In this document: positions 18,689 through 57,100 of the stretch, piece by piece
Layout of the letters: each line of letters begins with the position of its first letter
Numbering within the stretch: the stretch's first letter is position 1
Assembly: GCA_964019335.1 (NCBI GenBank)
Contig: OZ025666.1
Location: 310,001 to 374,000 of the forward strand
Direction: 5' to 3'
DNA: 64,000 nucleotides
DNA from: Diplonema japonicum
Taxonomy: Eukaryota; Protista; Euglenozoa: Diplonemea
Notes under the pieces: model-generated
The model's input: only the letters and a program-made list of their open reading frames with translations
The model's database searches: none
Told to the model about the DNA's origin: nothing
Made by a program: the position numbers and the translations under genes

Positions 18689-21600
18689 ATGTCACGCGCG
18701 CTCTTGTGCGTGCTGTCCCTCGGGACGGCAGCTGCTCTTCAAACATGCCCACTCAACTTCGTGGGGAACGTGAAGCAGTTCGTGGTGGAGCAGGAGAACG
18801 GGAAGAACCGCAGGACGGTCCCTGCTGTGGAGAGGGCGATGACAGCGAAGGAGTTCTACGACTTCAACTCTTGGAGCAGCCACACCGGGTTTGAGAAGGC
18901 TGGTGTCTCGAACATGTTCCTGTACAGGGACCTGAACCACCCCGACCACCTGTCCTTCTTCTGGACCAGCGGGATCGACCACCCCCACGGCAACCAGCCC
19001 ACCGCTTCTGTCGACGGTCTCATCAGCGGCATCCCCGATGGGGTCACCATTGCTGAAATGGACGACAGGTCTGATGAGTTTGACTGGACCACCAGCAGCA
19101 CAATGGGTGTCATCGACCACAACCAGATCACCTCTGGGACCAGGAACATCGGTTGCCGTTGGAGGTTCGCCGAGAACACCGACGGCGGTGCCATCGAAGG
19201 GCTTCCCACGAACCTGAACTGGGAGATGAAGATGACCACGAAGTTCCACTTCGGGATCGACACCTGGTCCTTCCACTTCGGCGACGGGTCCACCGCACAG
19301 GACATGGACCCCTCCGAGCCTGTGTACCTTCGCCCTGTGGTGACGACTGTGGACACCGGTGTTGCCCCCTACCCCGGGACGGCAGGGAAGGAGACCTTCT
19401 GCACCCTTGTGAAGTCCGACAACGATGGGGAGCAGCTGACCTACACCTTCAGTTGGGGCGACGATACCCCCGACACCGTTGTGACGAAGACGGAAGGAAA
19501 CCTTGCCTGTGCCGAGCACGACTTCTGCGGTCCCGTGTCGGCGACCTGTGGTGGGACGGCACCCCGCAAGGTGCGTGTGTTTGCGAAGGGGTCCGGTTGC
19601 AGCGCCGTCCACAAGATCCTTGCGGATGAGGAGATCGGGACCTGCCCGCCGCTCAACTTCGTGGGGGACGTGAAGCAGTTCGTGGTGGAGCAGGAGAACG
19701 GGAAGAACCGCAGGACGGTCCCTGCTGTGGAGAGGGCGATGACAGCGAAGCAGTTCTACGACTTCAACTCTGTGAGCGCGCACACCGGACTTGAGAAGGC
19801 TAAGACCTCGAACATGTTCCTGTACAGGGATCTCATGAACCCCGACCACCTGTCCTTCTTCTGGATCCACGGTATTGACCACCCCGAGGGGAACCAGCCT
19901 GAGTCCGACGTCGACGCTCTCATCACTGGGATCCCGAGTGGTGTCACCATTGCGCAGAGCGACGACAGGACGGCCGAGTGGGACTGGACCAGCAGCAACA
20001 AGCTCGGGGACATCACCCACAACGGCGAGAACATCGGCGGGCACTGGTGGTTCAACCAGAACACAGACGGCGGTGCTCTTGACGGTTTCCCCACGAACCT
20101 GAACTGGGAGATTAAGATCCAAGCGAACTTCATCAGGGGGATCGACACCTGGTCCTTCCTCTTCGGCGACGGGTCCCTGCAGCAGGACATGGACATGAGC
20201 GAGCCTGTGTACCTTCGCCCTGTGGTGACCTCTGTGGATCTTGGTGTGGCCCCTTACCCTCAGGTGGCTGGTGCCGAGACCTTCTGCACCCTCGTGGAGT
20301 CCATCACACAGGAGCAGCTGACCTACACCTTCAAGTGGGGCGACGAGACCCCCGACACCGTTGTGACTGGACCTGCTGGCCATGTTACCTGTGCGTCGCA
20401 CGACTTCTGCGGTCCCGTGTCGGCGACCTGTGGTGGGACGGCACCCCGCAAGGTGCGTGTGTTCGTCTCGAAGTCCGGTTGCAGCACCGTCCACAAGATC
20501 CTTGCGGATGAGGAGATCGGGACCTGCCCGCCGCTCAACTTCGTGGGGGACGTGAAGCAGTTCGTGGTGGAGCAGGAGAACGGGAAGAACCGCAGGACGG
20601 TCCCTGCTGTGGAGAGGGCGATGACAGCGAAGCAGTTCTACGACTTCGACTCTTGGAGCGCGCACACAGGGTTTGAGAAGGCTGGGACCTCGAACATGTT
20701 CCTGTACAGGGACCTGAACCACCCCCACCACCTGTCCTTCTTCTGGATCCACGGTATCGACCACCCCCAGGGGAACCAGCCTGAGTCCGACGTCGACGCC
20801 CTCATCACCGGGATCCCGAGTGGTGTCACCATTGCGCAGAGCGACGACAGGACGGCCGAGTGGGACTGGACCAGCAGCAACAAGCTCGGGGACATCACCC
20901 ACAACGGCGGGAACATCGGCGGGCACTGGTGGTTCAACCAGAACACAGACGGCGGTGCTCTTGACGGTTTCCCCACAAACCTGAACTGGGAGATTAAGAT
21001 CCAAGCGAACTTCATCAGGGGGATCGACACCTGGTCCTTCCACTTCGGCGACGGGTCCCTGCAGCAGGACATGGACATGAGCGAGCCTGTGTACCTTCGC
21101 CCTGTGGTGACCTCTGTGGATCTTGGTGTGGCCCCTTACCCGACTGTGGCCGGTCCTGAGACCTTCTGCACCCTCGTGGAGTCCATCACACAGGAGCAGC
21201 TGACCTACACCTTCAAGTGGGGCGACAACACCCCCGACACCGTTGTGACTGGACCTGCTGGGAGCCTTGCCTGTGCAACACACAACTTCTGCGGAGCCAT
21301 CTCGCAGACCTGTGGTGGGACGGCACCCCGCAAGGTGCGTGTGTTCGTGAAGAAGACGGGCTGCGTGGAGATGGACAGGATCCTTGCAGACGAGAAGGTG
21401 GACGATGTGACCTGCGGGAACCACGAGGGCGTGAAGGTGAGCATCGAGGGGGCCACCGTTGCGGGCAACGATGTGAACGGGGAGATGGAGTTCAGCAACA
21501 GCGAGGCGGTGCTGACGAAGATCCCCGAGAACATGAGGGAGATGCAGGTTCACACCCCTGCTGCCATTCCCAAGGACACCACCATCACCCTCAGCTGCTG

Positions 21601-21928
21601 CGGGACTGAGGTCTGCGAGTTCATCGTGTCACACTACCACTGCCCTCCGTGCTCGGGGAAGGTGAACGGTGGCTTCCCCGCCCTACTCCCTCTGTCTGGG
21701 TTCGAGTCGGCCTCCTGCGCTCCCAAGTGGGGGTTGGCAGAGCAGAAGATGGTGTCGTACAGGGTTCAGGTGGATGCGGGGGCCTCTCTGGTCCTTCCCG
21801 AGACCACCGAGGAGGCCACATCCTTCGTTATCTTCAGCAAGGTTGGTGAGCTGGCGGACCCGTGGTGCCAGAAACCTAAGAAGTTTGGGTGTGGCGGTCC
21901 CTGTCCTCCTTCTAAGTGCACGTGTTAA
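18689..21928 (+). CDS. Secreted protein with three ~294-300 aa repeats (unknown beta-rich domain + PKD-like domain) and a Cys-rich C-terminal domain
   Basis: Signal peptide MSRALLCVLSLGTAAA; repeat starts near 18749, 19649 and 20531; YTFxWGDxTPD is PKD-like; intronless, very high GC3. Confidence 0.85.
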   Translation: MSRALLCVLSLGTAAALQTCPLNFVGNVKQFVVEQENGKNRRTVPAVERAMTAKEFYDFNSWSSHTGFEKAGVSNMFLYRDLNHPDHLSFFWTSGIDHPHGNQPTASVDGLISGIPDGVTIAEMDDRSDEFDWTTSSTMGVIDHNQITSGTRNIGCRWRFAENTDGGAIEGLPTNLNWEMKMTTKFHFGIDTWSFHFGDGSTAQDMDPSEPVYLRPVVTTVDTGVAPYPGTAGKETFCTLVKSDNDGEQLTYTFSWGDDTPDTVVTKTEGNLACAEHDFCGPVSATCGGTAPRKVRVFAKGSGCSAVHKILADEEIGTCPPLNFVGDVKQFVVEQENGKNRRTVPAVERAMTAKQFYDFNSVSAHTGLEKAKTSNMFLYRDLMNPDHLSFFWIHGIDHPEGNQPESDVDALITGIPSGVTIAQSDDRTAEWDWTSSNKLGDITHNGENIGGHWWFNQNTDGGALDGFPTNLNWEIKIQANFIRGIDTWSFLFGDGSLQQDMDMSEPVYLRPVVTSVDLGVAPYPQVAGAETFCTLVESITQEQLTYTFKWGDETPDTVVTGPAGHVTCASHDFCGPVSATCGGTAPRKVRVFVSKSGCSTVHKILADEEIGTCPPLNFVGDVKQFVVEQENGKNRRTVPAVERAMTAKQFYDFDSWSAHTGFEKAGTSNMFLYRDLNHPHHLSFFWIHGIDHPQGNQPESDVDALITGIPSGVTIAQSDDRTAEWDWTSSNKLGDITHNGGNIGGHWWFNQNTDGGALDGFPTNLNWEIKIQANFIRGIDTWSFHFGDGSLQQDMDMSEPVYLRPVVTSVDLGVAPYPTVAGPETFCTLVESITQEQLTYTFKWGDNTPDTVVTGPAGSLACATHNFCGAISQTCGGTAPRKVRVFVKKTGCVEMDRILADEKVDDVTCGNHEGVKVSIEGATVAGNDVNGEMEFSNSEAVLTKIPENMREMQVHTPAAIPKDTTITLSCCGTEVCEFIVSHYHCPPCSGKVNGGFPALLPLSGFESASCAPKWGLAEQKMVSYRVQVDAGASLVLPETTEEATSFVIFSKVGELADPWCQKPKKFGCGGPCPPSKCTC

Positions 21929-28746: not shown

Positions 28747-29357
28747 AAACAAAAAATTGAAAAAAGATTTTAGAGAATGCTTGTATTTAAATATCCTTTT
28801 TGCCCCCCCCCCCATTTCCTCTTTAATGAAGGAAGAAACTTTTTTAAAAAGAAAAAAAGAAAAAGGGAGGGGCGAGGGGTTGGAGCGTCTTTCCGTTTCC
28901 TCTCACTTGTTTCCCCACCCCCCCTTTTTTTTTAAATTATTTCTTTTGTATTAACGATGTTGTATGATCAGCGTGACTGAAAGATGGCATTTTTTTTTTT
29001 TTTGTTGGTTGTTTTGTCGATTTTTACACAATCGACACGGTGCGTGTTTTTCTTTTTTTAAAAAAAAGTTTTTAATTTTTAAAGACTTGTGATGGAGACT
29101 GATGGAAGATTGCATCGTCTCGAATAGGTGTTTGGTTGTTAAAAGGATGAGAACAAAGGTGGCGTCTTACAAGGACCTCCTTTAGCTTCCTCCTTACCTT
29201 CTCTGACACCACTGCTTCTAATAAAAAGAGTTCATTTTCAAAGTCAAAGATGAAGTTATGGACCCCCCTCTTCCTGCTTTTTCCCTTTTCAAAAACCCTA
29301 TGAAACCAATCCTTAAAGAATTTTAAAATCCTCAAAGAGATTTTTTTTGGTTGCGAC

Positions 29358-29388
<31 letters not shown>

Positions 29389-29589
29389 GAAAAAGAAAAA
29401 AACGCGGACCATTTGTGTTTTTTTGTTCCGGGCATAAGGTTCAACCCCCATGACAGATATGATTGTTTTTTTTAAGGGGGCGTCTCACAAAGACTTCCTT
29501 TAACTCATTTTTTTTTTTGTCCCCAATTTTTCTCCTCAATTCATTTCCGGAAATATAAAAGAAAACACAAATAAAAAAAAGAAGTAAAA

Positions 29590-32500
29590 ATGAACAACAG
29601 GCGAGTGATGCTGTGCATGCTGGTGGCTGTCCTGGCGCTCTCTGCACGGGCTGATGAGAAGAGGGGCACGATCGAGGGTCCCGTGATCGGGATCGACCTT
29701 GGGACGACCTACTCCGTGGTGGGTGTGTGGCAGAACGGGCAGGTGGAGATCGTCCCGAACGAGATGGGTAACCGTATCACCCCCTCCGTCGTCGCCTTCA
29801 CTGAGACCGAGCGTCTCATCGGTGACGGTGCCAAGAACCAGATGTCCCAGAACCCCGACAACACCATCTACACCGTGAAGCGTCTTATCGGCCGACTGTT
29901 CTCTGACAAGGTATGTTTGGGAAATGAAAGTACAGGGAAGAAAGAGGGGGAAGGGGAAAGGGAGGGGGGTGGCATGTATTTTTTTTTGGCTTTGTTGATT
30001 GAAACCTGTGATGAGAACAACGACATCAACACTCTCGTTCTTCTGATTTTAGTTATGAAGACAGATGTTCCGTTCATGCTTCTGCAATGCTGAGGATATG
30101 CGACATAATCATTTTTTTCCAAATACCGGAAACACTCCACGGTTGCCCATCTTTTTCCCATGTGGACACAGAAAGACAGAAGCATCCCATTCCTTCACGT
30201 TGTTTCCCAGTTAGTGAAAAGAAGCGGAAAGAGGGAGGCTGAGACACCCGCATTGGAGGGACAGCATTCTGCAAACCTTCACCATTACCCCCCAGGGTAG
30301 CTTTTTGAAGTGTGCTGGAGGGCAAGTTTGGAAGGTGAGAGTGGAAGAGAAGCAGCTGAGGTCTTTTGTGTGGTGGTGAGGAGGGGCAAGAAAACCGACA
30401 TGATGACCACATCATATCCACTAAATTTTCTGATGAAGAGTCTTAAAATCTACAATGTCATAGTTACTCTGATCTCTTTCCGTCCTTTCCCTTTGCTCAC
30501 TTTTTCACCCAGAAAAACAGAACAAGAATAACCCCCCCCCCCCCCCCCCCCCCGCATTTAAGGCAAGGGAATGAAGCATTTAGTCTTGTTTATCCCTAGT
30601 CATTGTGGGGCAGATCCGCAAGCACATCAAGACGGAAGATATAATACCGGAAACACTCCACGGTTGCCCTCTTCCCTTAAGTGGAGGTGATGACCACCAG
30701 ACCCCTGGTTAGATGTTTTCCCCATGTGGGCACAGAAAGACAGAAGCATCCCATTCCTTCACGTTGTTTCCCAGTTAGTGAAAAGAAGCGGAAAGAGGGA
30801 GGCTGAGACACCCGCATTGGTGTAGCTTGATAATTTTCCTTCGGAATGATGAGAAACAAAATTCATAGATCTCGTTCGTCTGAGCAGACTTCCATTTTTT
30901 TGGAGGGCTGCGTGTGACTGATAAGAATTTTCGGCCTTCAAGCTGACCTTATTTTTTGCTGCCCTTCTCACTCTGTTGGCAGCAGGCCTTCACACCCTGT
31001 GATGAGAACAACGACATCAACACTCTCGTTCTTCTGATTTAGTTATGAAGACAGATGTTCCGTTCATGCTTCTGCAATGCTGAGGATATGCGACATAAAT
31101 AAAATAAGGTTCTTTTTCCAAATACCGGAAACACTCCACGGTTGCCCTCTTCCCTTAAGTGGAGGTGACGACCACCAGACCCCTGGTTAGATGTTCTTGT
31201 TTTTCTGAGCATTGATGTGTGGTGCCCAGCTATTTCACCGGTCATTCCCTCTCTTACTAAGGCAGAGAAGTTGTGCAGTGAGGCCTATTCCCCAACATGT
31301 CGAGAAGCATCCTTTCCTTCACGTTGTTTCCCAGTTAGTGAAAAGAAGCGGAAAGAGGGAGGCTGAGATCTCAAGAAGGGGGGCATTCGTTGTACCACCC
31401 ATCCACCCCCCGCATTTAAGGCAAGGGAATGAAGCATTTAGTCTTGTTTATCCCTAGTCATTGTGGGGCAGATCCGCAAGCACACCAAGACGGAAGATAG
31501 AAAACCCTTTTCACCTTCGCAGAAACCCAAAAGAAGGCTCGTCTGATGACAAACCATATTTCTATATTTCACCTCTGACGCTTTGAGGGGTCTGCCCGAA
31601 AGGGTGGGCTCAGTTTGAAAATACGAACTTTTCGTCACACTGACCATGCCATCTACCGTCGGGACCCACTCTTCCCTGTGATGATAATGCACTCCGTTTA
31701 TCTTTGTAGGTTGGGACAACTGAGCACCTCGTGTGTTGAGGATGCTGCATTAGGATTTGTTAATCTAGAATAGACTGAGAAGGAAGACTAAAAGAGAAAA
31801 GCAACGAACAAGGTGGTCACAGCTAGTGGCAGCCCCAGCGACCCTCCATGGATCTGACCACCCGTTCCGACTCACCCAGATAGAGCTACGCCTCATATTC
31901 TCTAAATATCTCCCATCAAAAGTAAAGTTTTCGAAGAAGTGGTTGTTCTTTCCTTTTTTAAATGATGAAAATATATTCTGTCAGTGCTGGCACCAGAGCA
32001 GAGCTGCGGAGGGGTAGCACCCTTTGTGACCATGAGCACATTTTTTATTATCCGCTGCTGAAATGAAAAGAAAGCCTACCCCACGAATACCTGGCAACAA
32101 CAACCACAACCCACCCCCCGCATTTAAGGCAAGGGAATGAAGCATTTAGTCTTGTTTATCCCTAGTCATTGTGGGGCAGATATGGCTTCAGGAGGGCAGC
32201 AGCACAGCCGTGTGATGACCAACACGAGGCATTTGTCTGAACACCTTTTGCGACGATTATAAAAACGTATTCTACCTTAACTTATCGCTGACGTTTGTGT
32301 TGCTGTGCTTGGGCTGATTTCCCTTTTTTTTCCTCTCCTTTTTTTTTTTTTTATTTTGCACCTGTCCCACCGGGGTGCAATTCTGCTGGGCTGAACACCC
32401 CCATGTCCTTCATCAGCGGGAAACACCCCGCAGATCAGTACCTCTAGCACTCGAGGCTGTCCCCCCTTTGTCCAAGATGAAAGAAAAAGGATCTTAGTTT

Positions 32501-34848
32501 TTTGCAATACCACCAGAAACACTCCACGGTTGCCCTCTTCCCTTAAGTGGAGGTGATGACCACCAGACCCCTGGTTAGAGTCTTTGAGAAGGTCGATGTG
32601 GCGTGCATCGTGCATCGTCCCTCGCTATGCCTGCTGAGCGGACATGCCCAGGAGAGTACGTAAGGGGCGAGAGATGTGTGTGTGTGTGGTCCCTGCCACC
32701 AGACCCCTGGTCAGAGGTGAATGAGATATCGACAAGAGTCATCAGGAACTTGTGGCATGATGACAAACCATGTTTAGTGTAGTGCGCATCTGACACCCTC
32801 TCTTGCAGGTGGTGGTTGAGAATACATACATCGGTCTTGACTCGTTTATCAACTGACCTTCCCACCTGCTTTCTTCTTTTTTGGTTCCCAGAGAAGTTCC
32901 AACAAGCTTCAGAGTCTCCGCATGATGATCAGAGAATACAATCCAATGACTGCTGTTTCCATGAGAAGCCATCTTCGGTGACATAAATTGTTTCTTAAAA
33001 ATTTCAAAAAACTGACAAAAACACCAGAACAAGAAAGAAACTTTGAAATTCTAGCCTCCCTCTCTCTCTCTCTCTCTCTCCTTCCCTTGTTTTTATTTAC
33101 TTACTCACAAACACAAACCCCACAGACCGTGCAAAGCGACAAGAAGCTGCTGTCCTACAAGATTGTTCCAGGCTCAAACGGGCACCCGGATGTGAAGGTG
33201 CACTACAAGGGTGAGGACAGGCAGTACACTGCGGAAGAGGTCTCGTCGATGGTGTTGACGAAGATGAAGGGTATTGCCGAGGATTTCCTTGGGAAGGAGG
33301 TGAAGAACGCTGTGGTGACTGTGCCCGCCTACTTCAACGAGGCACAACGTCAGTCGACGAAGGACGCTGGTACGATCGCCGGTTTGAACGTGGTGCGCGT
33401 GATCAACGAGCCGACGGCTGCGGCCATTGCCTACGGGCTGGACAAGAGGGACGAGGGTGAGAAGAACATCCTCGTCTTCGACCTTGGTGGTGGTACCTTC
33501 GATGTGTCGCTCCTCCAGATCGACGACGGCTTCTTCGAGGTGATCGCCACCAATGGTGACACCCACTTGGGTGGTGAGGACTTCGACAACAGGATGGTAT
33601 GGTAAAGAAGAAAGAAAAGGAGGAAAAAAAAAAAAAAAAAAAACCCACCAATCCACACCACAGGTGAAGCACTTCTTGAAGGTGATCCAGAAGAAGCACG
33701 GGAGGGACCTGTCGAAGAACCAGAGGGCCCTCGCCCGTTTGAGGAAGGCCTGTGAGTCGGCGAAGCGTCAGCTCTCCACGCAGCCCGAGGCCCGTGTTGA
33801 GGTGGACGGGTTGGACGAGGGTCTGGACTTCTCGGAGAAGCTGAACCGTGCGAAGTTCGAGGAGCTGAACATGGACCTGTTCAAGGGTACCCTGAACCCC
33901 GTGAAGGCTGTGCTGGCGGACGGGAAGCTGAAGAAGGAGGAGGTGGACGAGATCGTGCTCGTGGGGGGGTCCACCCGTATCCCGAAGATCCAGAACCTCA
34001 TCAAGGACTTCTTCAACGGGAAGGAGCCCAACAAGGGGATCAACCCTGACGAGTCTGTTGCCTACGGTGCGACGGTGCAGGGGGCCGTGATGAGCGGGGA
34101 GGTGAACGAGATCCTCGTGGCGGACGTGGTGTCCCTGTCGCTGGGGATCGAGACCGCTGGGGGGGTGATGACGAAGCTCGTGGAGCGAAACACGCGGATC
34201 CCGACGAAGAAGGCGCAGACCTTCTCGACGTACCAGGACAACCAGCCCGGTGTGAACATCCAGGTCTTCGAGGGGGAGCGTTCGATGACGAAGGACAACA
34301 GGCTTCTCGGGAAGTTCGAGCTGTCGGGGATCCCTCCCGCCCCCCGTGGTGTGCCGCAGATCGAGGTGTCGTTCGAGGTTGACGCGAACGGGATCCTCAC
34401 CGTGGGGGCGGAGGACAAGGCGAGCAACAACAAGGAGGCGATCACGATCGCGAACGACAAGGGAAGGCTCAGCGAGGAGGAGATCGCGAAGATGGTTCGC
34501 GAGGCCGAGGAGTTCCAGGAGGAGGACAAGAAGCTGAAGGAGAGGGTGGAGGCGAAGAACACCCTTGAGTCGACCGCCTACAACCTGAAGAACCAGGTGA
34601 ACGACGACGAGAAGCTCGGCGGGAAGCTCGACGAGGACGACAAGACGGCGATCGAGGAGGCGGTGAAGGAGGCTCTTGACTGGTTGGACGAGAACCCGTC
34701 GGCCGACAAGGAGGAGTACGACGAGCAGCTCCAGAGCCTCCAGAGCATCACCAACCCCATCGTCTCCAAGGTCTACCAGCAGGGCGCCACTGAGGGCGGT
34801 GCTGGCGGCAGTGAGGACCAGGACATGGACGACTCTGACGAGCTCTGA
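29590..34848 (+). CDS. BiP: ER luminal Hsp70 (BiP/GRP78), copy 1. Exons 29590-29910, 33126-33596, 33664-34848
   Basis: Signal peptide, [25 protein letters not shown]-terminal SDEL; phase-0 GTATG..CAG introns of 3215 and 67 nt. Confidence 0.97.
30005..30095 (+). ncRNA. Box C/D snoRNA, double guide: 5.8S UUGmCAG (Gm75-equivalent) and SSU AAGAAmCG
   Basis: CCT-GTGATGA..CTGA-GG. D guide GCTTCTGCAATG and D' guide CTCTCGTTCTT place the D+5 nucleotide on sites recalled as conserved. Copies near 30996, 47749, 49159, 57516, 58504, 63392. Confidence 0.85.
30181..30247 (+). ncRNA. AGA-box snoRNA candidate, target unknown (~12 copies in the window)
   Basis: AGCATCCC..GGGAGGCT stem followed by G-AGA-CAC. 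Confidence 0.65.
30275..30343 (+). ncRNA. AGA-box pseudouridylation guide for LSU CAAACUU-Psi-A-AAUGG
   Basis: ACCTTC/GAAGGT stem; pocket CCATT + AAGTTTG; 14 nt to AGA. Confidence 0.75.
30397..30474 (+). ncRNA. Box C/D snoRNA targeting LSU GUAAmCUAUGAC (yeast Am2256-equivalent)
   Basis: ATGATGA at 30400; guide GTCATAGTTACT immediately before CTGA at 30469 is antisense to AGTAACTATGAC. Confidence 0.88.
30550..30617 (+). ncRNA. AGA-box snoRNA candidate, target unknown (~10 copies)
   Basis: CCCCGCA..TGTGGGG-C-AGA with upper stem AGGGA/TCCCT. Confidence 0.65.
30646..30716 (+). ncRNA. AGA-box pseudouridylation guide for SSU GU-Psi-G-GUGGAG (yeast Psi1290-equivalent); ~15 full copies
   Basis: ACCRG/CTGGT stem; pocket CACTCCAC + ACCA; 15 nt to AGA. 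Confidence 0.75.
30843..30948 (+). ncRNA. Box C/D snoRNA, double guide: SSU ACGAAmCGAGA and LSU UUGAmAGGCCGAA
   Basis: GG-A-ATGATGA..CTGA-CC; guides TCTCGTTCGT and TTCGGCCTTCAAG; copies near 47598, 49006, 51423, 58351, 63239. Confidence 0.85.
31540..31645 (+). ncRNA. Box C/D snoRNA; guides antisense to SSU AGGUGAAAU and GUGACGAAAA
   Basis: TGATGA..ATTTCACCT-CTGA..TTTTCGTCACA-CTGA. Confidence 0.75.
31675..31781 (+). ncRNA. Box C/D snoRNA targeting LSU UGUCmCC (yeast Cm2337-equivalent)
   Basis: GTGATGA at 31678; D' guide GTAGGTTGGGACAA-CTGA; terminal CTGA at 31775. Confidence 0.82.
31957..32064 (+). ncRNA. Box C/D snoRNA targeting SSU UCUGmGUGCCAGCAC (yeast Gm562-equivalent)
   Basis: ATGATGA at 31962; guide GTGCTGGCACCAGA + CAGA D'; CTGA at 32058. 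Confidence 0.82.
32209..32293 (+). ncRNA. Box C/D snoRNA targeting LSU CAAAmUGCCUCG (yeast Am2281-equivalent)
   Basis: CG-T-GTGATGA..CGAGGCATTTGT-CTGA..CTGA-CG. Confidence 0.85.
32371..32437 (+). ncRNA. AGA-box snoRNA candidate
   Basis: Perfect CGGGGTG/CACCCCG stem followed by C-AGA; upper stem CTGCTG/CAGCGG. Confidence 0.7.
32615..32677 (+). ncRNA. AGA-box snoRNA candidate
   Basis: TCGTCCCT/AGGGGCGA stem followed by G-AGA; copies near 35919, 47974, 50778, 60123. Confidence 0.65.
32754..32858 (+). ncRNA. Box C/D snoRNA; D' guide antisense to SSU GCGCACUACACU
   Basis: GG-C-ATGATGA..AGTGTAGTGCGCAT-CTGA..CTGA-CC. Confidence 0.78.
32919..33017 (+). ncRNA. Box C/D snoRNA candidate, guide uncertain
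   Basis: ATGATGA at 32922 and CTGA at 33012; ACAATCCA is antisense to LSU UGGAUUGU. Confidence 0.55.
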
Positions 34849-35754: not shown

Positions 35755-36830
35755 TTTGTTCATGCTTCTGGTTGCAATGCTGAGGCTATGCGACACAATG
35801 ACGTTTACCCAAATACCAGAAACACTCCACGGTTGCCCTCTTCCCTTAAGTGGAGGTGATGACCACCAGACCCCTGGTTAGAGTCTTTGAGAAAGGTCGA
35901 TGTGGCGTGCATCGTGCATCGTCCCTCGCTATGCCTGCTGAGCGGACATGCCCAGGAGAGTACGTAAGGGGCGAGAGATGTGCTGTGGGCGATGCTCTGG
36001 TATGATCATCCCGCGGTGCCTGTCGGGCTGCATTTCGTGCTTGAGAGTGTACGTATGGGATGGGAGAGGGAGGGCCGGTGTGGGGGATTAAATATAGATA
36101 AGATTATACCAGAAACACTCCACGGTTGCCCTCTTCCCTTAAGTGGAGGTGATGACCACCAGACCCCTGGTTAGATGTTTTCCCCATGTGGGCACAGAAA
36201 GACAGAAGCATCCCATTCCTTCACGTTGTTTCCCAGTTAGTGAAAAGAAGCGGAAAGAGGGAGGCTGAGACACCCGCATTCAGGTTGATCATCCCGCGGT
36301 GCCTGTCAGGCTACATTTCGTGCTTGAGAGTGTACGTATGGGATGGGAGAGGGAAACCAGTGTGGGGATTAAATAAATAAGATACCGGACATGACTTTCC
36401 TGCCGTCGACTTTGGCGAACCTCCTGCCAACCACATTGGCTTTCCATGTCCTTGGGGATCACGTCAGTTTCTTCTTGACGGACGTGGCCTGGGACACCTC
36501 CAGGACGTACCTCTGAGACAGGGTGACGTCAGTGTCGCACGAGGCGAGCGCACATTCCAATTCGGCGGCGTTGCCGGTGGCGCTCCTGATCGCCCACCCC
36601 CTGACCGACACGACGCCGAGGTCGCCTGTAGTTCTATTTGACGGAAATCGCGTTGACTCCACTCCATCTGGTTTGAACCCCCCCGCATTTAAGGCAAGGG
36701 AATGAAGTAGTTAGTCTTGTTTATCCCTAGTCATTGTGGGGCAGATATGAATGCCGATTATCAGGCATCAAGTGCATAATGGTAAACCATGTTTAGTACA
36801 GTGTGCATCTGACACCCCGTCTCACAGGGT
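35755..36830 (+). ncRNA. Reshuffled, partly decayed snoRNA sub-cluster downstream of BiP1
   Basis: Copies of intronic modules near 35815, 35919, 36108, 36207, 36680, plus a new duplicated hairpin+AGA module (~36006, ~36288) and decayed C/D copies (~35758, ~36778). Confidence 0.75.
36388..36665 (-). mobile_element. Degenerate fragment resembling the N-terminus of a non-LTR retrotransposon APE endonuclease
   Basis: Minus-strand translation VRGWAIRSATGNAAELECALASCDTDVTLSQ resembles xxWNVRS...EL...L...xDVxxxQE; contains a stop; GC-rich island inside the snoRNA modules. Confidence 0.45.
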
Positions 36831-46199: not shown

Positions 46200-47597
46200 G
46201 AAGGGGTAAAATGAAAACACAGTGCATATGGCACCCCTGGGAAGAACGACTACAGGCCTAGCTACTGAGTGAAACACAAGAAGAAGAGGGGAAAAAAAAA
46301 GGGGGAACAAAAAAAAAAATTATAAAAGAAAAAGAGGTAATTTCTTTTTTTCTCTTTTTTCTTCCCCTTCCCCCTGTTTTTTTTTTTTTTTTTTAAATTT
46401 TTATTCTTTTTTTTTTTTACCCCTTTTTCCCGGTTTTTTTTTCTCCATCCTGTTGTATTATTGTTCTGTACCTTGCACTACATTCGTGGTGTTTTTTCTT
46501 TTTTTTTTTTTTTCCTTTCTTTTTTTTTTCCCTCCCTTATATGAACGGGGGAAACAACTTCTGCAACCAGCGTCCGGTTGGGGGGTTGTTCTCTTCCTGT
46601 TGATCCATGTTTGTAATGTTCTCCCCCTCCCCCTGTCCCCATATCCCCTTTTTTATTTTTATTTTCGATCTTTTTTTTTCATATTTTTTTTTGAAAGTGT
46701 TGACGTTGGAAAAACAAAAAAAACAAAAAAAAAGAAGAAAATCCTGCCCCTTCAATGAACACCCATTTTTTTCTTTTTATCTTTTTTTTTTACACCTTGT
46801 TTCTCCCCTTTCTTTTATTAGCGGTAGACACAACGAGGAATTATGATAAGAGTTTCTTTTTTTTTTTTTTTCGCAAACACGTTTACCCCACCCTTCTCAT
46901 ATATTTCCCCCTCCTCTTTTCTTGAAAAGAAAATGAAAAATATTCTCTTCCCCCCCCCCCCCGTCCTTTCTAGACAGGTGGCAAGAAAAGTTTTCAATAT
47001 ATTTTTTTTCCGGTTTCTCCGCTATTTGTTTGTACCCCCCCCCCCCCCTTCCCCTCCCCCACTCCCTGAGAAAAAAAGGAAACTAAAAAAATTCCCTTTT
47101 GGTATTATCCAGCTCCAATGCTTCTGGTCCACTCGAACAAAGGGAGAAGGAAGTTCATATAAGAAAAGACGGGACACGTACAATGGAGGACGAAGAAAAA
47201 AAAAAAAAAAGAAGTAGGGCGAAATTAATTTGGAAGAAAAAAAAAAAAAGACTTTTTTTCATTTTTTTGTGTTGTAATGAGAGAAGGGAGGGTAGGGGGG
47301 GTTGAAAAAAAATGAGAAGGGGAAGAAGAAGGGAAGAAAAAAAACTGCAGCAGGGCTATATCCCCCTCCCTCTCTCCACCCCTCCCCCCAAAGAAGTTAC
47401 TTGTACTCATCGAACCCCCGATACCACTGTTTCCCTTTCCCCTATTTTTTTTTTTTTGAAAGTCGTTCTAGAACTCCACACAACCATAAAGGGCTACACA
47501 CGATGACGTTACCATATAAGGAGAAGATAGGTACGAGAGAAACACGAAGTCTGTACAATACTTCTTGAGTAGAGCGGTCGGGGAACTTGTATTTTCG

Positions 47598-50500
47598 AAA
47601 TGATGAGAAACAAAATTCATAGATCTCGTTCGTCTGAGCAGACTTCCATTTTTTTGGAGGGCTGCGTGTGACTGATTAGAATTTTCGGCCTTCAAGCTGA
47701 CCTTATTTTTGCTGCCCCTCTCACTCTGTTGGCTGCAGGCCTTCACACCCTGTGATGAGAACAACGACATCAACACTCTCGTTCTTCTGATTTAGTTATG
47801 AAGACAGATGTTCCGTTCATGCTTCTGCAATGCTGAGGATATGCGACATAATCATTTTTTACCCCCAAATACCAGAAACACTCCACGGTTGCCCTCTTCC
47901 CTTAAGTGGAGGTGATGACCACCAGACCCCTGGTTAGAGTCTTTGAGAAGGTCGATGTGGCGTGCATCGTGCATCGTCCCTCGCTATGCCTGCTGAGCGG
48001 ACATGCCCAGGAGAGTACGTAAGGGGCGAGAGATGTGCTGTGGTCAAAGCAAGAAAAAGGAGAACTACCAGAAACACTCCACGGTTGCCCTCTTCCCTTA
48101 AGTGGAGGTGATGACCACCAGACCCCTGGTTAGAGGTGAACGAGATATCGACAAGAGTCATCAGGAACTTGTGGCATGATGACAAACCATGTTTAGTGTA
48201 GTGCGCATCTGACACCCCTCTTGCAGGTGGTGGTTGAGAATACATACATCGGTCTAGACTCGTTTATGACTGACCTTCCACATTAGTTATTTCGTTTTTA
48301 AGAGATCATGAACAGACTAGGGTTGGGCGCTTATAACAGAGGACAGAAGCATCCCATTCCTTCACGTTGTTTCCCAGTTAGTGAAAAGAAGCGGAAAGAG
48401 GGAGGCTGAGACACCCGCATTGGAGGGACAGCATTCTGCAAACCTTCACCATTACCCCCCAGGGTAGCTTTTTGAAGTGTGCTGGAGGGCAAGTTTGGAA
48501 GGTGAGAGTGGAAGAGAAGCAGCTGAGGTCTTTGGTGTGGTGGTGAGGAGGGGCAAGAAAACCGACATGATGACCACATCATATCCACTAAATTTTCTGA
48601 TGAAGAGTCTTAAAATCTACAATGTCATAGTTACTCTGATCTCTTTCCGTCCTTTCCCTTTGCTCACTTTTTCACCCAGAAAAACAGAACAAGAATAACC
48701 CCCCCCCCCCCCCCCCGCATTTAAGGCAAGGGAATGAAGCATTTAGTCTTGTTTATCCCTAGTCATTGTGGGGCAGATCCGCAAGCACATCAAGACGGAA
48801 GATATAATACCGGAAACACTCCACGGTTGCCCTCTTCCCTTAAGTGGAGGTGATGACCACCAGACCCCTGGTTAGATGTTTTCCCCATGTGGGCACAGAA
48901 AGACAGAAGCATCCCATTCCTTCACGTTGTTTCCCAGTTAGTGAAAAGAAGCGGAAAGAGGGAGGCTGAGACACCCGCATTGGTGTAGCTTGATAATTTT
49001 CCTTCGGAATGATGAGAAACAAAATTCATAGATCTCGTTCGTCTGAGCAGACTTCCATTTTTTTGGAGGGCTGCGTGTGACTGATAAGAATTTTCGGCCT
49101 TCAAGCTGACCTTATTTTTTGCTGCCCTTCTCACTCTGTTGGCAGCAGGCCTTCACACCCTGTGATGAGAACAACGACATCAACACTCTCGTTCTTCTGA
49201 TTTAGTTATGAAGACAGATGTTCCGTTCATGCTTCTGCAATGCTGAGGATATGCGACATAAATAAAATAAGGTTCTTTTTCCAAATACCGGAAACACTCC
49301 ACGGTTGCCCTCTTCCCTTAAGTGGAGGTGACGACCACCAGACCCCTGGTTAGATGTTCTTGTTTTTCTGAGCATTGATGTGTGGTGCCCAGCTATTTCA
49401 CCGGTCATTCCCTCTCTTACTAAGGCAGAGAAGTTGTGCAGTGAGGCCTATTCCCCAACATGTCGAGAAGCATCCTTTCCTTCACGTTGTTTCCCAGTTA
49501 GTGAAAAGAAGCGGAAAGAGGGAGGCTGAGATCTCAAGAAGGGGGGCATTCGTTGTACCACCCATCCACCCCCCGCATTTAAGGCAAGGGAATGAAGCAT
49601 TTAGTCTTGTTTATCCCTAGTCATTGTGGGGCAGATCCGCAAGCACACCAAGACGGAAGATAGAAAACCCTTTTCACCTTCGCAGAAACCCAAAAGAAGG
49701 CTCGTCTGATGACAAACCATATTTCTATATTTCACCTCTGACGCTTTGAGGGGTCTGCCCGAAAGGGTGGGCTCAGTTTGAAAATACGAACTTTTCGTCA
49801 CACTGACCATGCCATCTACCGTCGGGACCCACTCTTCCCTGTGATGATAATGCACTCCGTTTATCTTTGTAGGTTGGGACAACTGAGCACCTCGTGTGTT
49901 GAGGATGCTGCATTAGGATTTGTTAATCTAGAATAGACTGAGAAGGAAGACTAAAAGAGAAAAGCAACGAACAAGGTGGTCACAGCTAGTGGCAGCCCCA
50001 GCGACCCTCCATGGATCTGACCACCCGTTCCGACTCACCCAGATAGAGCTACGCCTCATATTCTCTAAATATCTCCCATCAAAAGTAAAGTTTTCGAAGA
50101 AGTGGTTGTTCTTTCCTTTTTTAAATGATGAAAATATATTCTGTCAGTGCTGGCACCAGAGCAGAGCTGCGGAGGGGTAGCACCCTTTGTGACCATGAGC
50201 ACATTTTTTATTATCCGCTGCTGAAATGAAAAGAAAGCCTACCCCACGAATACCTGGCAACAACAACCACAACCCACCCCCCGCATTTAAGGCAAGGGAA
50301 TGAAGCATTTAGTCTTGTTTATCCCTAGTCATTGTGGGGCAGATATGGCTTCAGGAGGGCAGCAGCACAGCCGTGTGATGACCAACACGAGGCATTTGTC
50401 TGAACACCTTTTGCGACGATTATAAAAACGTATTCTACCTTAACTTATCGCTGACGTTTGTGTTGCTGTGCTTGGGCTGATTTCCCTTTTTTTTCCTCTC

Positions 50501-51560
50501 CTTTTTTTTTTTTTTATTTTGCACCTGTCCCACCGGGGTGCAATTCTGCTGGGCTGAACACCCCCATGTCCTTCATCAGCGGGAAACACCCCGCAGATCA
50601 GTACCTCTAGCACTCGAGGCTGTCCCCCCTTTGTCCAAGATGAAAGAAAAAGGATCTTAGTTTTTTGCAATACCACCAGAAACACTCCACGGTTGCCCTC
50701 TTCCCTTAAGTGGAGGTGATGACCACCAGACCCCTGGTTAGAGTCTTTGAGAAGGTCGATGTGGCGTGCATCGTGCATCGTCCCTCGCTATGCCTGCTGA
50801 GCGGACATGCCCAGGAGAGTACGTAAGGGGCGAGAGATGTGTGTGTGTGTGGTCCCTGCCACCAGACCCCTGGTCAGAGGTGAATGAGATATCGACAAGA
50901 GTCATCAGGAACTTGTGGCATGATGACAAACCATGTTTAGTGTAGTGCGCATCTGACACCCTCTCTTGCAGGTGGTGGTTGAGAATACATACATCGGTCT
51001 AGACTCGTTTATCAACTGACCTTCCCACCTGCTTTCTTCTTTTTTGGTTCCCAGAGAAGTTCCAACAAGCTTCAGAGTCTCCGCATGATGATCAGAGAAT
51101 ACAATCCAATGACTGCTGTTTCCATGAGAAGCCATCTTCGGTGACATAAATTGTTTCTTAAAATCTTCAAAACTGACAACTGTGGTTTCCATCACTTCCC
51201 CGTTGATGAGGACCAAGCAGTGGAACCGACCTATGAAGAGAGGAAGTGGCCTTTTGGGTCTTGTTAAGTCATAACTTTCCAGACCCCTGGTTAGATGTAT
51301 TCCCCATGTGGGCACAGAAAGACAGAAGCATCCCATTCCTTCACGTTGTTTCCCAGTTAGTGAAAAGAAGCGGAAAGAGGGAGGCTGAGACTTCATAGGG
51401 TGTAACTTGATTTCTTTCCTTCGGAATGATGAGAAACAAAATTCATAGATCTCGTTCGTCTGAGCAGACTTCCATTTTTTGGAGGGCTGCGTGTGACTGA
51501 TAAGAATTTTCGGCCTTCAAGCTGACCTTATTTTTGCTGCCCCTCTCACTCTGTTGGCTG
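47598..51560 (+). ncRNA. Free-standing (host-less) copy of the snoRNA cluster
   Basis: About 48343-51163 is near-identical to BiP intron 30177-33001; extra reordered modules flank it; no BiP exons nearby. Confidence 0.88.
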
Positions 51561-56147: not shown

Positions 56148-56808
56148 CTACGTTGTCGGCGTACGCGTACGCAGCAAAATCTGAAAAAGTGCGTACGGCT
56201 GTGCGTACGGCTCCTTACACTTACAGGTACAGGCTACGGGTCAAAGGGCTTACGTTGGACAAGAGGGGCAAATAAAAAAAAATGGGAGTGGGGTACAAAA
56301 ATGGATGGAAGAGAGGGTGGGCGGCAGGCTTCATGCAAACACTTTTACACCCGATTCGTCTCTATCTAGAGACGTTCTCTTCGTCATCAGGATCGGGCGC
56401 CCTGCAGGTCTTCCAACGCCAGTTCAGTTACACGCCAGTAGTCTCTCACAAACTGCGTGCAGGTGAAACTACGTTTGCTGAAGTAGAGTTTGACCTGAAT
56501 TATATCTCTGACAAGAGAATCAGCTTTGTCAAATCTCAATGGCCGATCTTTGGGCTTCCACCTTGAAAGGTGCCCCTTACCCGAGCTCCGTACACCGCAG
56601 GCCTGACCCTAAAGCCTAGTGCCAACAGGTCGCAAGAGAGGCCCTTGAGTATCCCACCACATGCCCAGTGACTATGGCCTTAGGCTTTTCCAAAATGAAT
56701 GCCGTACGCAAAAAATGCGTACGCGTACGCAGCAAAAATAAAAAAAGTGCGTACGGCGTACGTTCGAAATACGCGTACGTACGGCCGTACGCCGATAACG
56801 TAGCCCTA
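56148..56808. mobile_element. MITE 2 (hAT-like ends) with CGTACG subterminal repeats
   Basis: TIR CTACGTTGTCGGCGTAC / GTACGCCGATAACGTAG, right end CCCTA; internal duplicated GTACGCGTACGCAGCAAAA..AAAAAGTGCGTACGGC. Confidence 0.7.
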
Positions 56809-57100
56809 GCCAAGATACTTAAAAGGAATGAAAAAAAAAGAGAATAAAAGAGGTGTGAGCTTATACCCCGTGCTACTTATTCATCTTAAGTTAGCAAAAA
56901 GAAAAAGAAGAAGAAGAAGAAAAAAGAGAGAGAAACAAAAAAAAATAGCTCAATATTTATATTCTTTGGAGTTTTTGTTTCTTTCTTTCCTGCCGCCTCA
57001 CCCTTTTTCCTTTGTATTGCCCGTAAAACTCAAACCCCCCCCCCCCCCACTTTTTGTTCACAGGATTTTTCAGGTTTCCAAAAGAAATACAAAAAAGAAA

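Follow-up and report, generated by a model that had tools for sequence, protein, structure and literature searches.

In a 64-kb window of the Diplonema japonicum genome, the whole stretch of DNA that we analyzed, we confirmed that the first intron of a predicted gene for BiP, the ER-lumenal Hsp70, holds a mixed array of putative box C/D and single-hairpin AGA-box guide RNA genes. This intron is very probably a GT-AG intron hosting guide RNA units on the strand of its own gene, and just one of many interchangeable homes for these modules. On present evidence the array does not reveal a new regulatory principle; it is an ordinary, newly seen kind of intron-hosted snoRNA cluster, without a special link to ER stress.

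The BiP host gene and its first intron

The host gene lies on the + strand and consists of three exons (29590–29910, 33126–33596 and 33664–34848) separated by a first intron of 3215 nt (29911–33125), which hosts the array, and a second of 67 nt (33597–33663). When each exon was translated separately, the Pfam HSP70 profile was contiguous, from position 1 to 599, over all three: exon 1 matches profile positions 1–75 (E 7e-32) and encodes a predicted signal peptide and the start of the ATPase domain, exon 2 matches positions 78–229 (E 1e-75), and exon 3 matches positions 231–599 and ends in ...SDEL followed by the stop codon. A hydrophobic N-terminus precedes the ATPase start, and the C-terminal ...DSDEL is an xDEL-type ER-retention motif. 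With a full Hsp70 domain, a putative signal peptide and an xDEL-type end, the predicted product has the features of BiP.

The start codon is the ATG at 29590 rather than at 29591, and intron 1 is therefore in phase 0. It begins with GTATGT at 29911 and ends with CACAG at 33125, and these ends (5' GTATGT, 3' CAG) agree with the published D. japonicum splice consensus (PMC12621601). The median intron of this organism is 41 nt (PMC12621601), making intron 1 approximately 78 times longer than the median. GT-AG splicing is the rule, and the organism's U2 and U6 snRNAs give full-length matches to the standard Rfam models. A sequence-only reading of the window had proposed a 3.2-kb BiP intron 1; the continuity of the HSP70 profile, the phase and the GTATGT...CAG ends bear this out and confirm 29911–33125, as far as sequence can, as a genuine GT-AG spliceosomal intron between Hsp70/BiP exons.

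Units of the array and their predicted rRNA targets

Intron 1 contains 10 box C/D units of nine kinds and 12 single-hairpin AGA-box units of six kinds, together with two truncated units and two to three conserved blocks outside the C/D and AGA kinds. All 22 full units, and the other features of the array described below, lie on the + strand; the full units represent 15 kinds (9 C/D and 6 AGA), several of which are present two or three times, in line with the approximately 15 different snoRNAs, C/D and AGA-box mixed, that had been expected. The truncated units are the 5' half of an H1 unit (30122–30150, recognized by repeat family D4 and alignment) and the 3' half of another (32684–32715). One conserved block of 143 nt (30253–30395) always lies between H3 and CDb and occurs in eight copies at 99% identity, with a fold z-score of +0.7; an 11-nt match to the LSU 5' end at 30353–30363 was rejected as meaningless, since about four such matches are expected by chance. 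A second block (31207–31308; five copies, no significant fold) is possibly an AGA-box RNA.

The motif TGATGA occurs 13 times on the + strand and twice on the − strand of intron 1, compared with 0.83 expected occurrences (maximum of six in 2000 shuffles), and all 10 C/D units combine a perfect TGATGA with a CTGA 70–100 nt downstream on the same strand, which lies inside the 60–120 nt that separate the C box (RUGAUGA) from the D box (CUGA) in snoRNAs of this class. In a strict terminal-stem test of these units, a clear 2-bp terminal stem was found in CDa only; compact euglenozoan C/D snoRNAs often have no terminal stem. Guides were evaluated by the D+5 rule, according to which the target pairs with the fifth nucleotide upstream of the D or D' box, on the organism's own rRNA and on 200 shuffled rRNAs. 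Antisense elements of this type have 10–21 nt and end beside D or D'; the predicted guides proved complementary to the organism's rRNA. Eight different D/D' guides beat 195–200 of the 200 shuffled rRNAs (0–5 of 200 shuffles were as good), and four further Watson-Crick antisense stretches of 13–15 nt lie upstream of degenerate D' boxes, with a register uncertain by 1 nt.

Both guides of CDa (copy 1, 30005–30095; copy 2, 30996–31085, repeat families D5 and D6, 100% identical) have predicted targets, SSU A1179 (yeast Am974) for the D' guide and 5.8S G74 (human Gm75) for the D guide, with duplexes of 17 bp and 16 bp that were equalled in 0 of 200 shuffles each; CDa also gives weak Rfam matches to SNORD96 and SNORD59 (23–28 bits, below gathering). 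The D guide of CDb (30397–30475) forms a perfect duplex of 12–13 bp (0/200 shuffles) directed to LSU A2329 (yeast Am2256), around which the U residues at +2, +4, +8 and +10 correspond to yeast Psi2258, 2260, 2264 and 2266. CDc (30843–30949) would target SSU A1540 by its D' guide and LSU A1543 by its D guide, with 13 bp each (0/200 and 1/200 shuffles). The D' guide of CDe (31676–31781), predicted to reach LSU C2410 (yeast Cm2337) through 13 bp with one mismatch (5/200 shuffles), is invariant in copies of 89–91% identity in which the D guide varies. CDg (32210–32294) pairs by its D' guide over 15 bp with one mismatch (0/200 shuffles) at LSU A2354 (yeast Am2281), while no target was found for its second, conserved D guide; the D' guide of CDh (32755–32859) forms 14 bp (0/200 shuffles) at SSU G1723, which we take to be the equivalent of yeast Gm1428.

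The remaining C/D kinds carry antisense elements of less certain register. CDd (31541–31646) contains a 15-nt element, invariant across diverged copies, that is complementary to SSU 1099–1113 and crosses a CUGA; its D' register is ambiguous. CDd was considered as U14 and rejected, since the SSU region with which it can pair is another one. The 14-nt guide of CDf (31960–32064) to the SSU 530-loop (607–620) is invariant in 13 variants in which the other guide varies. By strict D+5 its target is G610; the equivalent of yeast Gm562, which the sequence-only reading had named, is G611 and is reached if D' is read one nucleotide earlier, so that the region stands and the exact residue is one nucleotide off. 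CDi (32920–33018) has an invariant 13-nt guide to LSU 2428–2440 upstream of a degenerate D' (AUGA) and a variable D-side region.

The conserved modification sites that the C/D guides had been expected to reach were thus recovered on the organism's own rRNA as 5.8S G74 and LSU A2329, A2354 and C2410 (yeast 2256, 2281 and 2337). Furthermore, the spacing of LSU U2264, A2329, A2354 and C2410 (65, 25 and 56 nt) equals that of yeast 25S positions 2191, 2256, 2281 and 2337, and the identities of neighbouring modified sites agree. No yeast equivalent was confirmed from the yeast table for LSU A1543 (compared with Am1449/Gm1450), LSU A2431, SSU A1540 or SSU 1101, and several second guides gave no target in the organism's rRNA, U2 or U6.

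Trypanosomatid AGA-box RNAs are single hairpins of 57–91 nt with the AGA box 3 nt from the 3' end; stem I has 5–8 bp and is followed by 1–3 unpaired nucleotides before AGA, stem II lies beside the pocket, and the bipartite pocket forms 3–9 bp per side with a target U 13–16 nt upstream of AGA (PMC2613932). Within these ranges, H1–H5 and H7 are 67–74 nt long, their 3' ends being judged from conservation, which breaks off 1–3 nt after AGA when paralogous copies are aligned. Stem I has 5 bp in H1, 7 bp in H2, H4 and H7, and 8 bp in H5, in each case followed by one unpaired nucleotide and AGA, and stem II has 5–7 bp, including G-U pairs in H1. An unrestricted search of the entire intron for AGA-box guides to rRNA gave no separation from shuffled rRNA (20–48 background hits, top scores of 11.5–14.5). 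Only pockets fixed beforehand from structure and conservation, which were then scored against 100 shuffled rRNAs, are informative, and those of H1, H4 and H7 were equalled in no more than one of 100 shuffles.

The pocket of H1 (30645–30716; also 31123–31194 and 32511–32582) comprises 5+8 Watson-Crick bp at 15 nt from AGA (0/100 shuffles) and points to SSU U1504, which on the organism's own rRNA agrees with the Psi1290 equivalent that had been predicted; nearby, C at −10, G at −19 and U at −21 correspond to yeast ac4C1280, Gm1271 and Um1269. H4 (32371–32437) would guide LSU U1027 (yeast Psi960) by a pocket of 7+5 bp at 14 nt (0/100 shuffles); it has a fold z-score of −2.05 and a weak Rfam match to TB8Cs3H1, and its stems, pocket and AGA are retained in copies of 88% identity. 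For H7 (31810–31883), whose block is nearly invariant in 10 variants with differing flanks, a pocket of 6+5 Watson-Crick bp at a distance of 15–16 nt (1/100 shuffles) suggests LSU U3066 (yeast Psi2944) as target, with A at +2, C at +4, C at +15 and U at +31 corresponding to yeast Am2946, Cm2948, Cm2959 and Psi2975. The guide of H2 (30550–30617; also 31408–31475 and 32116–32183) is weak, with 6+4 bp at 14 nt and 19/100 shuffles as good; its fold z-score is −3.5, and its candidate target, LSU U2264 (yeast Psi2191), lies 65 nt from A2329, which is the yeast 2191-to-2256 spacing.

The conserved block of H3 (30178–30247; also 30742–30811 and 31303–31371) ends at AGA+3 in 17 sequence variants, and H5 (32611–32677), likewise a conserved block, has a fold z-score of −2.0. 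For these two no convincing target was found in rRNA, U2 or U6 (explicit-pocket rRNA search: best score of 8.0 for H3, none for H5). Similarly shaped 'AGA-like' RNAs that are independent of Cbf5 exist (PMC2613932), and H3 and H5 could belong to this class. MFE z-scores were not significant for H1, H3 and H7.

Rfam at gathering score gave no match anywhere in the 64-kb window; in E-value mode there were sub-threshold matches only, of 28 bits at most compared with gathering scores of 41–45. A metagenome scan for the CDa double-guide architecture gave no hits.

Copies of the array and rival explanations

The modules recur on the + strand farther along the window. A small set (H1, H5, H1, H3 and a CDa remnant) lies downstream of the BiP gene at 35758–36280; an array copy without surrounding BiP exons occupies 47594–51560, with 48336–51179 being 99.6% identical to 30168–33018; a second BiP gene (57101–62356) has the same array in its intron 1 (57422–60633; 98.4% identity over 5.6 kb); and a further module set downstream of that gene (63040–63699) runs off the window. 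Most ORFs of 180 aa or more are also on the + strand. Of the five BiP genes on the contig, four carry an array in intron 1, which is 1.9–3.4 kb long in these genes (the BiP-2 array is 1.9 kb), and in the fifth, BiP-1, the intron at this codon boundary measures 43 nt. Each module has 4–38 copies on the contig, 87 of 88 genome matches are on the + strand of C19, and shuffling has distributed the modules over at least a dozen arrays of a single chromosome. The near-identical array without BiP exons and the further module sets show that the array is not specific to the BiP intron, and with 4–38 copies of each module guide supply would be independent of splicing this intron.

Paralogous copies keep boxes and targeted guides while losing their flanks, a pattern of selective conservation: 82% of columns are variable in flanks and 38% in untargeted guides, compared with 6.6% in targeted guides and 7.3% in boxes (targeted versus untargeted guides, Fisher p = 3e-9). 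This pattern rests on older copies of 81–91% identity; where copies are young (99–100% identical), part of the conservation is recency.

Transcript evidence came from runs stored as Logan contigs, for which RNA or DNA was inferred from depth profiles; such contigs lose minor variants, and their depth is a poor measure of expression. In two RNA-like runs, exon depth is in the hundreds to thousands compared with an intron depth of 0–60, and low-depth contigs span neighbouring modules. The 5' part of exon 1 that is specific to the BiP-3/4/5 copy type is present in RNA-like contigs at a depth of 507–703, and the 5' UTR and exon 1 of the second BiP gene of the window also lie in an RNA-like contig. 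Among the RNA-like contigs, from which minor variants are dropped, none joins 29910 to 33126 for this copy type, the junction letters being those of the more abundant BiP-1/2 type; that paralogue type is spliced at the same site in a contig that may derive from either BiP-1 or BiP-2. Intron 2 (33597–33663) is spliced in RNA-like contigs, and longer read-through carries paralogue-type letters.

This lack of a junction-spanning contig of the present copy type would fit an orphan exon 1 followed by an intergenic array, with the real gene beginning downstream. We consider such an arrangement scarcely credible, since exon 2 begins at HSP70 profile position 78 without a start codon or signal peptide, exon 1 supplies both profile positions 1–75 and the signal peptide, the short-intron paralogue is spliced at the same site, and three copies show exon 1 at an equal distance and with 100% conservation; it is also present in RNA-like contigs. 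It is also very unlikely that the modules are decaying duplicates of functional snoRNA genes located elsewhere, spread by segmental duplication. The two truncated units (30122–30150 and 32684–32715) and the guide or box deletions in some copies elsewhere (CDg v5, CDc v9) are what decay would produce, but almost every unit of the intron has its full length and has kept its boxes and guides intact, with a sequence that equals, or nearly equals, the variant most frequent on the contig, and a separate 'master' locus does not exist: only one of the 88 genome matches falls outside such arrays on C19.

The sequence-only reading had suggested that the array couples guide supply to BiP transcription and splicing, and hence to ER stress. 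The association is repeated, with intron 1 arrays in four of five BiP paralogues, and vertebrate Hsp70-family genes host snoRNAs (U14 in hsc70; PMC7277114). However, the repetition among BiP genes stems from tandem duplication of gene plus intron (98–100% identity), and the modules, encoded 4–38 times each, also occur downstream of genes and in arrays without BiP exons, including the 99.6% identical one; we therefore find no support for this coupling and regard it as highly improbable. Somewhat less remote, and still unlikely, is the proposal that BiP-3, -4 and -5 are retained mostly as transcription units that host snoRNAs while BiP-1 (and BiP-2) supplies most of the chaperone. BiP-3/4/5 differ from the other copies in signal peptide and by approximately 10% nucleotide divergence in exon 2. 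In favor of the proposal, one paralogue has the 43-nt intron at the same site, and in one RNA-like run (X10) the BiP-1/2-type exon contig has a depth of 4188 compared with 507 for the BiP-3/4/5-specific part of exon 1, contig depth measuring expression poorly. Yet the BiP-3/4/5 frames are intact and 99.4–100% identical, with full HSP70 profile, signal peptide and ...SDEL, and BiP-2, of the highly expressed type, also has a 1.9-kb array.

We therefore favor a GT-AG intron that was probably enlarged from the organism's typical length of approximately 40 nt to 3.2 kb by a same-strand array of guide RNAs, nine C/D kinds for methylation and six euglenozoan-type AGA-box kinds for pseudouridylation. 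We infer that RNA polymerase II would transcribe the array within the BiP pre-mRNA, itself in a one-directional gene cluster, that snoRNP proteins would bind to the box motifs while the intron is nascent or once it has been excised, and that nucleases would trim the spacers, releasing snoRNAs of 65–110 nt that could guide 2'-O-methylation and pseudouridylation at conserved rRNA sites. As arrays are found in four of five BiP introns, between genes and downstream of BiP, the BiP site appears to be tolerated rather than linked to ER stress, and the site may have multiplied as genes were duplicated in tandem and modules were shuffled. A bolder view, which we hold to be possible but doubtful, is that snoRNA modules are shuffling cassettes for which introns of tandemly duplicated genes are safe harbours, with recombination or gene conversion ongoing and host copies possibly kept chiefly as snoRNA carriers. 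Modules are 99–100% identical between arrays while host exons have diverged by approximately 10%; together with lengths of 43 nt and 1.9–3.4 kb at the same site, this would imply ongoing conversion or recombination moving arrays in and out of introns.

Comparison with known snoRNA clusters

The array would account for long introns, which short-read surveys acknowledged they could overlook (PMC12621601), and the occurrence of 43-nt and 1.9–3.4-kb introns at one site in recent paralogues is a natural experiment on intron growth. The locus gives 15 candidate guide RNAs with concrete target sites for diplonemids, a group that ranks among the most abundant heterotrophic protists of the sea, and suggests that diplonemids have single-hairpin AGA-box guides for pseudouridine in common with kinetoplastids and euglenids. 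We found no description of guide snoRNAs for diplonemids in the literature, and neither the genome note for D. japonicum nor the paper on diplonemid introns mentions snoRNAs; to this extent the earlier suggestion that the arrangement may be undescribed stands, but intronic snoRNA clusters as such are established in other groups.

Trypanosomatids have almost no cis-spliced introns, and their clusters are consequently intergenic. Like the array described here, trypanosomatid and Euglena clusters are mixed and repeated, lie on the coding strand of one-directional gene arrays and include AGA-box guides, and they are derived by processing of long polycistronic transcripts (PMC2613932). Unlike in trypanosomatids, several of the D. 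japonicum clusters are inside spliceosomal introns of protein-coding genes. Thus, a euglenozoan with ordinary cis-splicing has reiterated snoRNA clusters in introns as well as between genes, and the intronic placement links trypanosomatid cluster organization to the plant-type intronic cluster.

As predicted here, several snoRNA genes lie on the sense strand of one spliceosomal intron, which is what characterizes an intronic snoRNA cluster. One host gene of such clusters in rice is reportedly an hsp70 gene. Intronic clusters were discovered in rice (Liang et al. 2002, as cited in PMC2780460) and subsequently in Drosophila (PMC2780460), and two are present in Ostreococcus tauri (PMC7671301). 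As here, several snoRNA genes, C/D and H/ACA mixed, follow one another head to tail in a single intron, on its sense strand, and in plants and green algae the snoRNAs are presumed to be freed from a polycistronic precursor (PMC2780460, PMC7671301). In contrast to the plant and algal clusters, the array described here has 22 full units (15 kinds) in one intron, its pseudouridine guides are predicted to be single-hairpin AGA-box RNAs, and the same array is also found outside introns with its modules shuffled among arrays.

The vertebrate hsc70 gene is likewise an Hsp70-family chaperone gene that hosts snoRNAs: its introns contain U14 (SNORD14), the classic example of an intronic snoRNA, which arises by processing of the pre-mRNA intron (PMC7277114). 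No unit of the intron 1 array was identified as U14, and whereas each hsc70 intron holds a single snoRNA and all are of one kind, the intron described here accommodates an entire array. Units of the array share predicted targets with SNORD96, SNORD59 and SNORD74 and with yeast snR54, snR63, snR13, snR64, snR56, snR83, snR8, snR32 and snR37. The likeness to these snoRNAs is confined to boxes and guides, and the pairing of guides within one RNA differs, CDa combining a SNORD59-type with a SNORD96-type guide.

BiP-3 and its first intron

The BiP gene under study, BiP-3 (29590-34848, + strand), opens with an exon (29590-29910) that comprises an ATG and a hydrophobic leader followed by the Hsp70 ATPase domain, and that ends in AAG/GTATGT; the frame resumes past CACAG at 33125 with TVQSDKK. 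The exons were translated one by one, with coverage of the Pfam HSP70 profile taken per exon: exon 1 covers profile positions 1-75, exon 2 (33126-33596, + strand) 78-229 and exon 3 (33664-34848, + strand; C-terminus ...DSDEL) 231-599. From these boundaries and this coverage, intron 1 (29911-33125) is therefore a phase 0 intron of 3215 nt, while intron 2 has 67 nt. The published median intron of D. japonicum is 41 nt, and the ends of intron 1 (5' GTATG, 3' CAG) agree with the published splice consensus (PMC12621601). Thus, the sequence-only reading of this interval as a spliceosomal intron of BiP is borne out by the HSP70 profile and the splice ends, although the ATG lies at 29590, one base before the start that it had implied.

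Upstream of BiP-3, an element of ~35 nt with a GGCGTCTYACAARGACYTCCTTTA core, mostly preceded by GATGAGAAC, occurs twice (29474-29508 and 29148-29190). Its contig depth is ~100-200x single copy in DNA-like sequencing runs and very high in RNA-like runs; it is short, highly repeated and expressed.

Guide units and their predicted rRNA targets

Intron 1 contains 13 TGATGA motifs on the + strand and two on the - strand, against 0.83 expected. Ten units have TGATGA followed by CTGA 70-100 nt downstream and, because CDa occurs twice, these represent nine box C/D kinds (CDa-CDi). The 20 nt preceding each CTGA were scored for antisense complementarity to the SSU, 5.8S and LSU of this organism (191-2260, 2393-2544 and 2750-6229 of the 6825-bp rDNA unit, locus L004), with the fifth nucleotide upstream of the box required to pair. 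Eight different D/D' guides outscored 195-200 of 200 locally shuffled rRNAs, with predicted targets at SSU A1179 (CDa D'), 5.8S G74 (CDa D), LSU A2329 (CDb D), SSU A1540 (CDc D'), LSU A1543 (CDc D), LSU C2410 (CDe D'), LSU A2354 (CDg D') and SSU G1723 (CDh D'). A box-free search added four perfect antisense stretches of 13-15 nt: 15 nt of CDd (31566-31580) to SSU 1099-1113, CDf to the SSU 530-loop (607-620), CDi to LSU 2428-2440, and 32876-32888 to LSU 1038-1050. Overall, 12 different antisense stretches of at least 12 nt were found on the + strand, against ~1 expected, and three on the - strand. The CDd element crosses a canonical CUGA; therefore, what looks like the D' box belongs to the guide itself, and a degenerate box further downstream must serve as the true D'.

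Further observations concern these units and their targets. The D-side of CDh (32839-32848) forms 10 perfect bp with SSU 1740-1749, a segment 17 nt 3' of G1723, the D' target, in a register that is wrong for methylation; this pairing may be accessory, aiding the D' guide. The 530-loop (L004 SSU 613-628) reads GUGCCAGCACCCGCGG where ...CAGCAGCCGCGG is usual, a variant shared with kinetoplastids. A run of ~24 C lies between CDb and the hairpin H2 (30524-30553), and reads are reported cut there. The double-guide architecture of CDa had no match in one metagenome scan.

A blind scan that tested every AGA triplet of the intron against rRNA gave no separation from shuffled rRNA, and the AGA-box hairpins were therefore delimited first via their paralogous copies. 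In the alignments of every kind, the conserved block starts just 5' of the basal stem and ends with AGA plus 1-3 nt. Six kinds were distinguished, H1, H2 and H3 with three copies each and H4, H5 and H7 with one each, and all conform to the trypanosomatid H/ACA-like definition (57-91 nt, stem I of 5-8 bp, 1-3 free nt before AGA, pocket 13-16 nt upstream; PMC2613932). Pockets were then set by structure alone and the best rRNA match was compared with 100 shuffles. Predicted targets were SSU U1504 for H1 (5+8 Watson-Crick bp; 0/100 shuffles as good or better), LSU U1027 for H4 (7+5 bp; 0/100), LSU U3066 for H7 (6+5 bp; 1/100) and LSU U2264 for H2 (6+4 bp; 19/100). For H3 and H5, neither rRNA nor U2 or U6 offered a convincing target, the two snRNAs being full-length Rfam model matches far over gathering scores. 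Only H2, H4 and H5 had significant MFE z-scores; non-significant values are usual where hairpins have open pockets.

Sites were checked against the yeast modification table of PMC8307265. The spacings of LSU 2264, 2329, 2354 and 2410 (65, 25 and 56 nt) are exactly those of yeast 25S Psi2191, Am2256, Am2281 and Cm2337, which makes U2264 the Psi2191 equivalent. Downstream of A2329, U is found at +2, +4, +8 and +10 (yeast Psi2258, 2260, 2264 and 2266) and C at +22 (m5C2278), and SSU A1179 has a U at +25, parallel to yeast Am974 with Psi999. Among the AGA-box targets, the surroundings of yeast Psi1290 (ac4C1280, Gm1271 and Um1269) are mirrored at SSU U1504 by C, G and U at -10, -19 and -21, those of Psi960 (Psi966) at LSU U1027 by U at +6, and those of Psi2944 (Am2946, Cm2948, Cm2959 and Psi2975) at LSU U3066 by A, C, C and U at +2, +4, +15 and +31, respectively. 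Two sub-threshold Rfam matches align the guide for 5.8S G74 to the consensus guide of SNORD96 and the CDe unit to SNORD74. The rRNA sites proposed earlier from consensus rRNA were thus found again on the organism's own rRNA, except that for CDf strict D+5 with CAGA as D' leads to G610, whereas the Gm562 equivalent is G611 by its spacing to yeast Am541 and Um578; either the register is off by one nucleotide, or the D' box is misread.

Paralogous arrays and selective conservation

Within the window, self-comparison revealed a second BiP gene and intron at 57098-62681 (BiP-4; 98.4% identical to BiP-3), and a repeat of the intron interior at 48336-51179 (99.6%) that lies in a 4-kb array (47594-51560) without flanking BiP exons, the nearest ORF starting at 51651. 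Smaller sets of modules follow each BiP gene (35758-36280; 63040 onwards). In the genome (62.5 Mb, 132 contigs), 87 of 88 matches to intron 1 fall within 113-452 kb of the same contig, C19, all 87 on the + strand. There are five BiP genes on C19. Intron 1 has 3215 nt in BiP-3, 3212 nt in BiP-4, 3418 nt in BiP-5 (exon 1 at C19:423426) and 1.92 kb in BiP-2 (exon 1 at C19:280752), where the modules are ordered differently. In BiP-1 (exon 1 at C19:278272), it is 43 nt long (C19:278512-278554; 1458-1499 of locus L009) and sits at the same codon boundary; it likewise begins with GTATGTTT, and its terminus, ...CACAATCACAG, is related. Exon 2 of BiP-1/BiP-2 shares 90% identity with its BiP-3/4/5 counterpart, yet the modules in common are 97-100% identical.

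Other elements were noted in this region. A conserved module of ~95 nt, GATCATCCCGCGGTGCCTGTC...GGCCGGTGTGGG, occurs in arrays outside BiP-3 intron 1 (35990-36085, 36290-36375 and C19:281283-281380) and is probably an additional kind of guide RNA. The BiP-2 intron (C19:282720-282890; ~1300-1480 of locus L008) contains two C/D-like units, CTGATGGCGGTGG...CTGA and CATGATGATTAGC...CTGA, that are absent from BiP-3 intron 1. CGTACG-type palindromic repeats (GCGTACGCGTACG...) lie at 56700-56800, ~300 bp upstream of BiP-4, and a long + strand ORF (18689-21928) includes a ~900-bp internal tandem duplication (18749-21352; 82-88% identity).

Each module has 4-38 copies on C19, some only 76-91% identical. 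In the nine C/D alignments of paralogous copies, the share of variable columns was 82% in the 8-nt flanks, 38% at guide positions without a predicted target, 13% at other internal positions, 7.3% in the boxes and 6.6% in guides with a predicted target (targeted versus untargeted guides, Fisher test, p = 3e-9). Copies that plainly carry deletions account for most changes in targeted guides and boxes. CDe, CDf and CDi each have an invariant targeted guide and a rewritten second guide; similarly, H4 copies at 88% identity retain the two stems, AGA and the two strands of the pocket, with the apical part altered.

Expression and relation to known clusters

Sequencing runs were available as contigs, which lose rare variants, and their RNA or DNA kind was deduced from depth behaviour. 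Runs X10 and X6 are RNA-like (exon depth hundreds to thousands, intron depth 0-60, reads spliced across intron 2), and X1 and X3 are DNA-like. In one X10 contig of 610 nt, exons 1 and 2 of the BiP-1/2 type are spliced together exactly at the position of intron 1, where a DNA contig carries the 43-nt intron. The BiP-3/4/5 type is represented solely by the 5' portion of exon 1 that is specific to it (29587-29723), with depth 507 in X10; X6 has this portion attached to the 5' UTR of BiP-4 (depth 703). Since the junction region is represented by contigs of the more abundant paralogue only, rare variants dropping out, and since the low-depth contigs that span neighbouring modules in RNA-like runs are not assignable to BiP-3 intron 1, removal of this intron and snoRNA processing are what we infer.

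We conclude that BiP-3 intron 1 is a real intron with a real, functional-looking array of predicted rRNA-modification guides. The likeliest mechanism is the standard one: the array would be co-transcribed with its host, within a one-directional gene cluster, snoRNPs would form on the boxes, and the spacers would then be trimmed off. The location in a BiP gene looks incidental, because the same modules occupy many arrays, in and out of introns. The suggestion that guide supply is coupled to ER stress through BiP splicing found no support, and such redundancy weakens it. What remains is mainly evolutionary: a single intron site spans 43 nt in one BiP paralogue but 1.9-3.4 kb in the other four, and modules are kept homogenised across arrays while the host exons diverge.

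Within the literature accessible to our search, we found no description of diplonemid snoRNAs or of intron-hosted clusters in Euglenozoa. Rice, Drosophila and Ostreococcus have snoRNA clusters inside introns (PMC2780460, PMC7671301), vertebrate hsc70 is a host of U14 (PMC7277114), and trypanosomatids and Euglena have mixed, reiterated clusters with AGA-box guides (PMC2613932).
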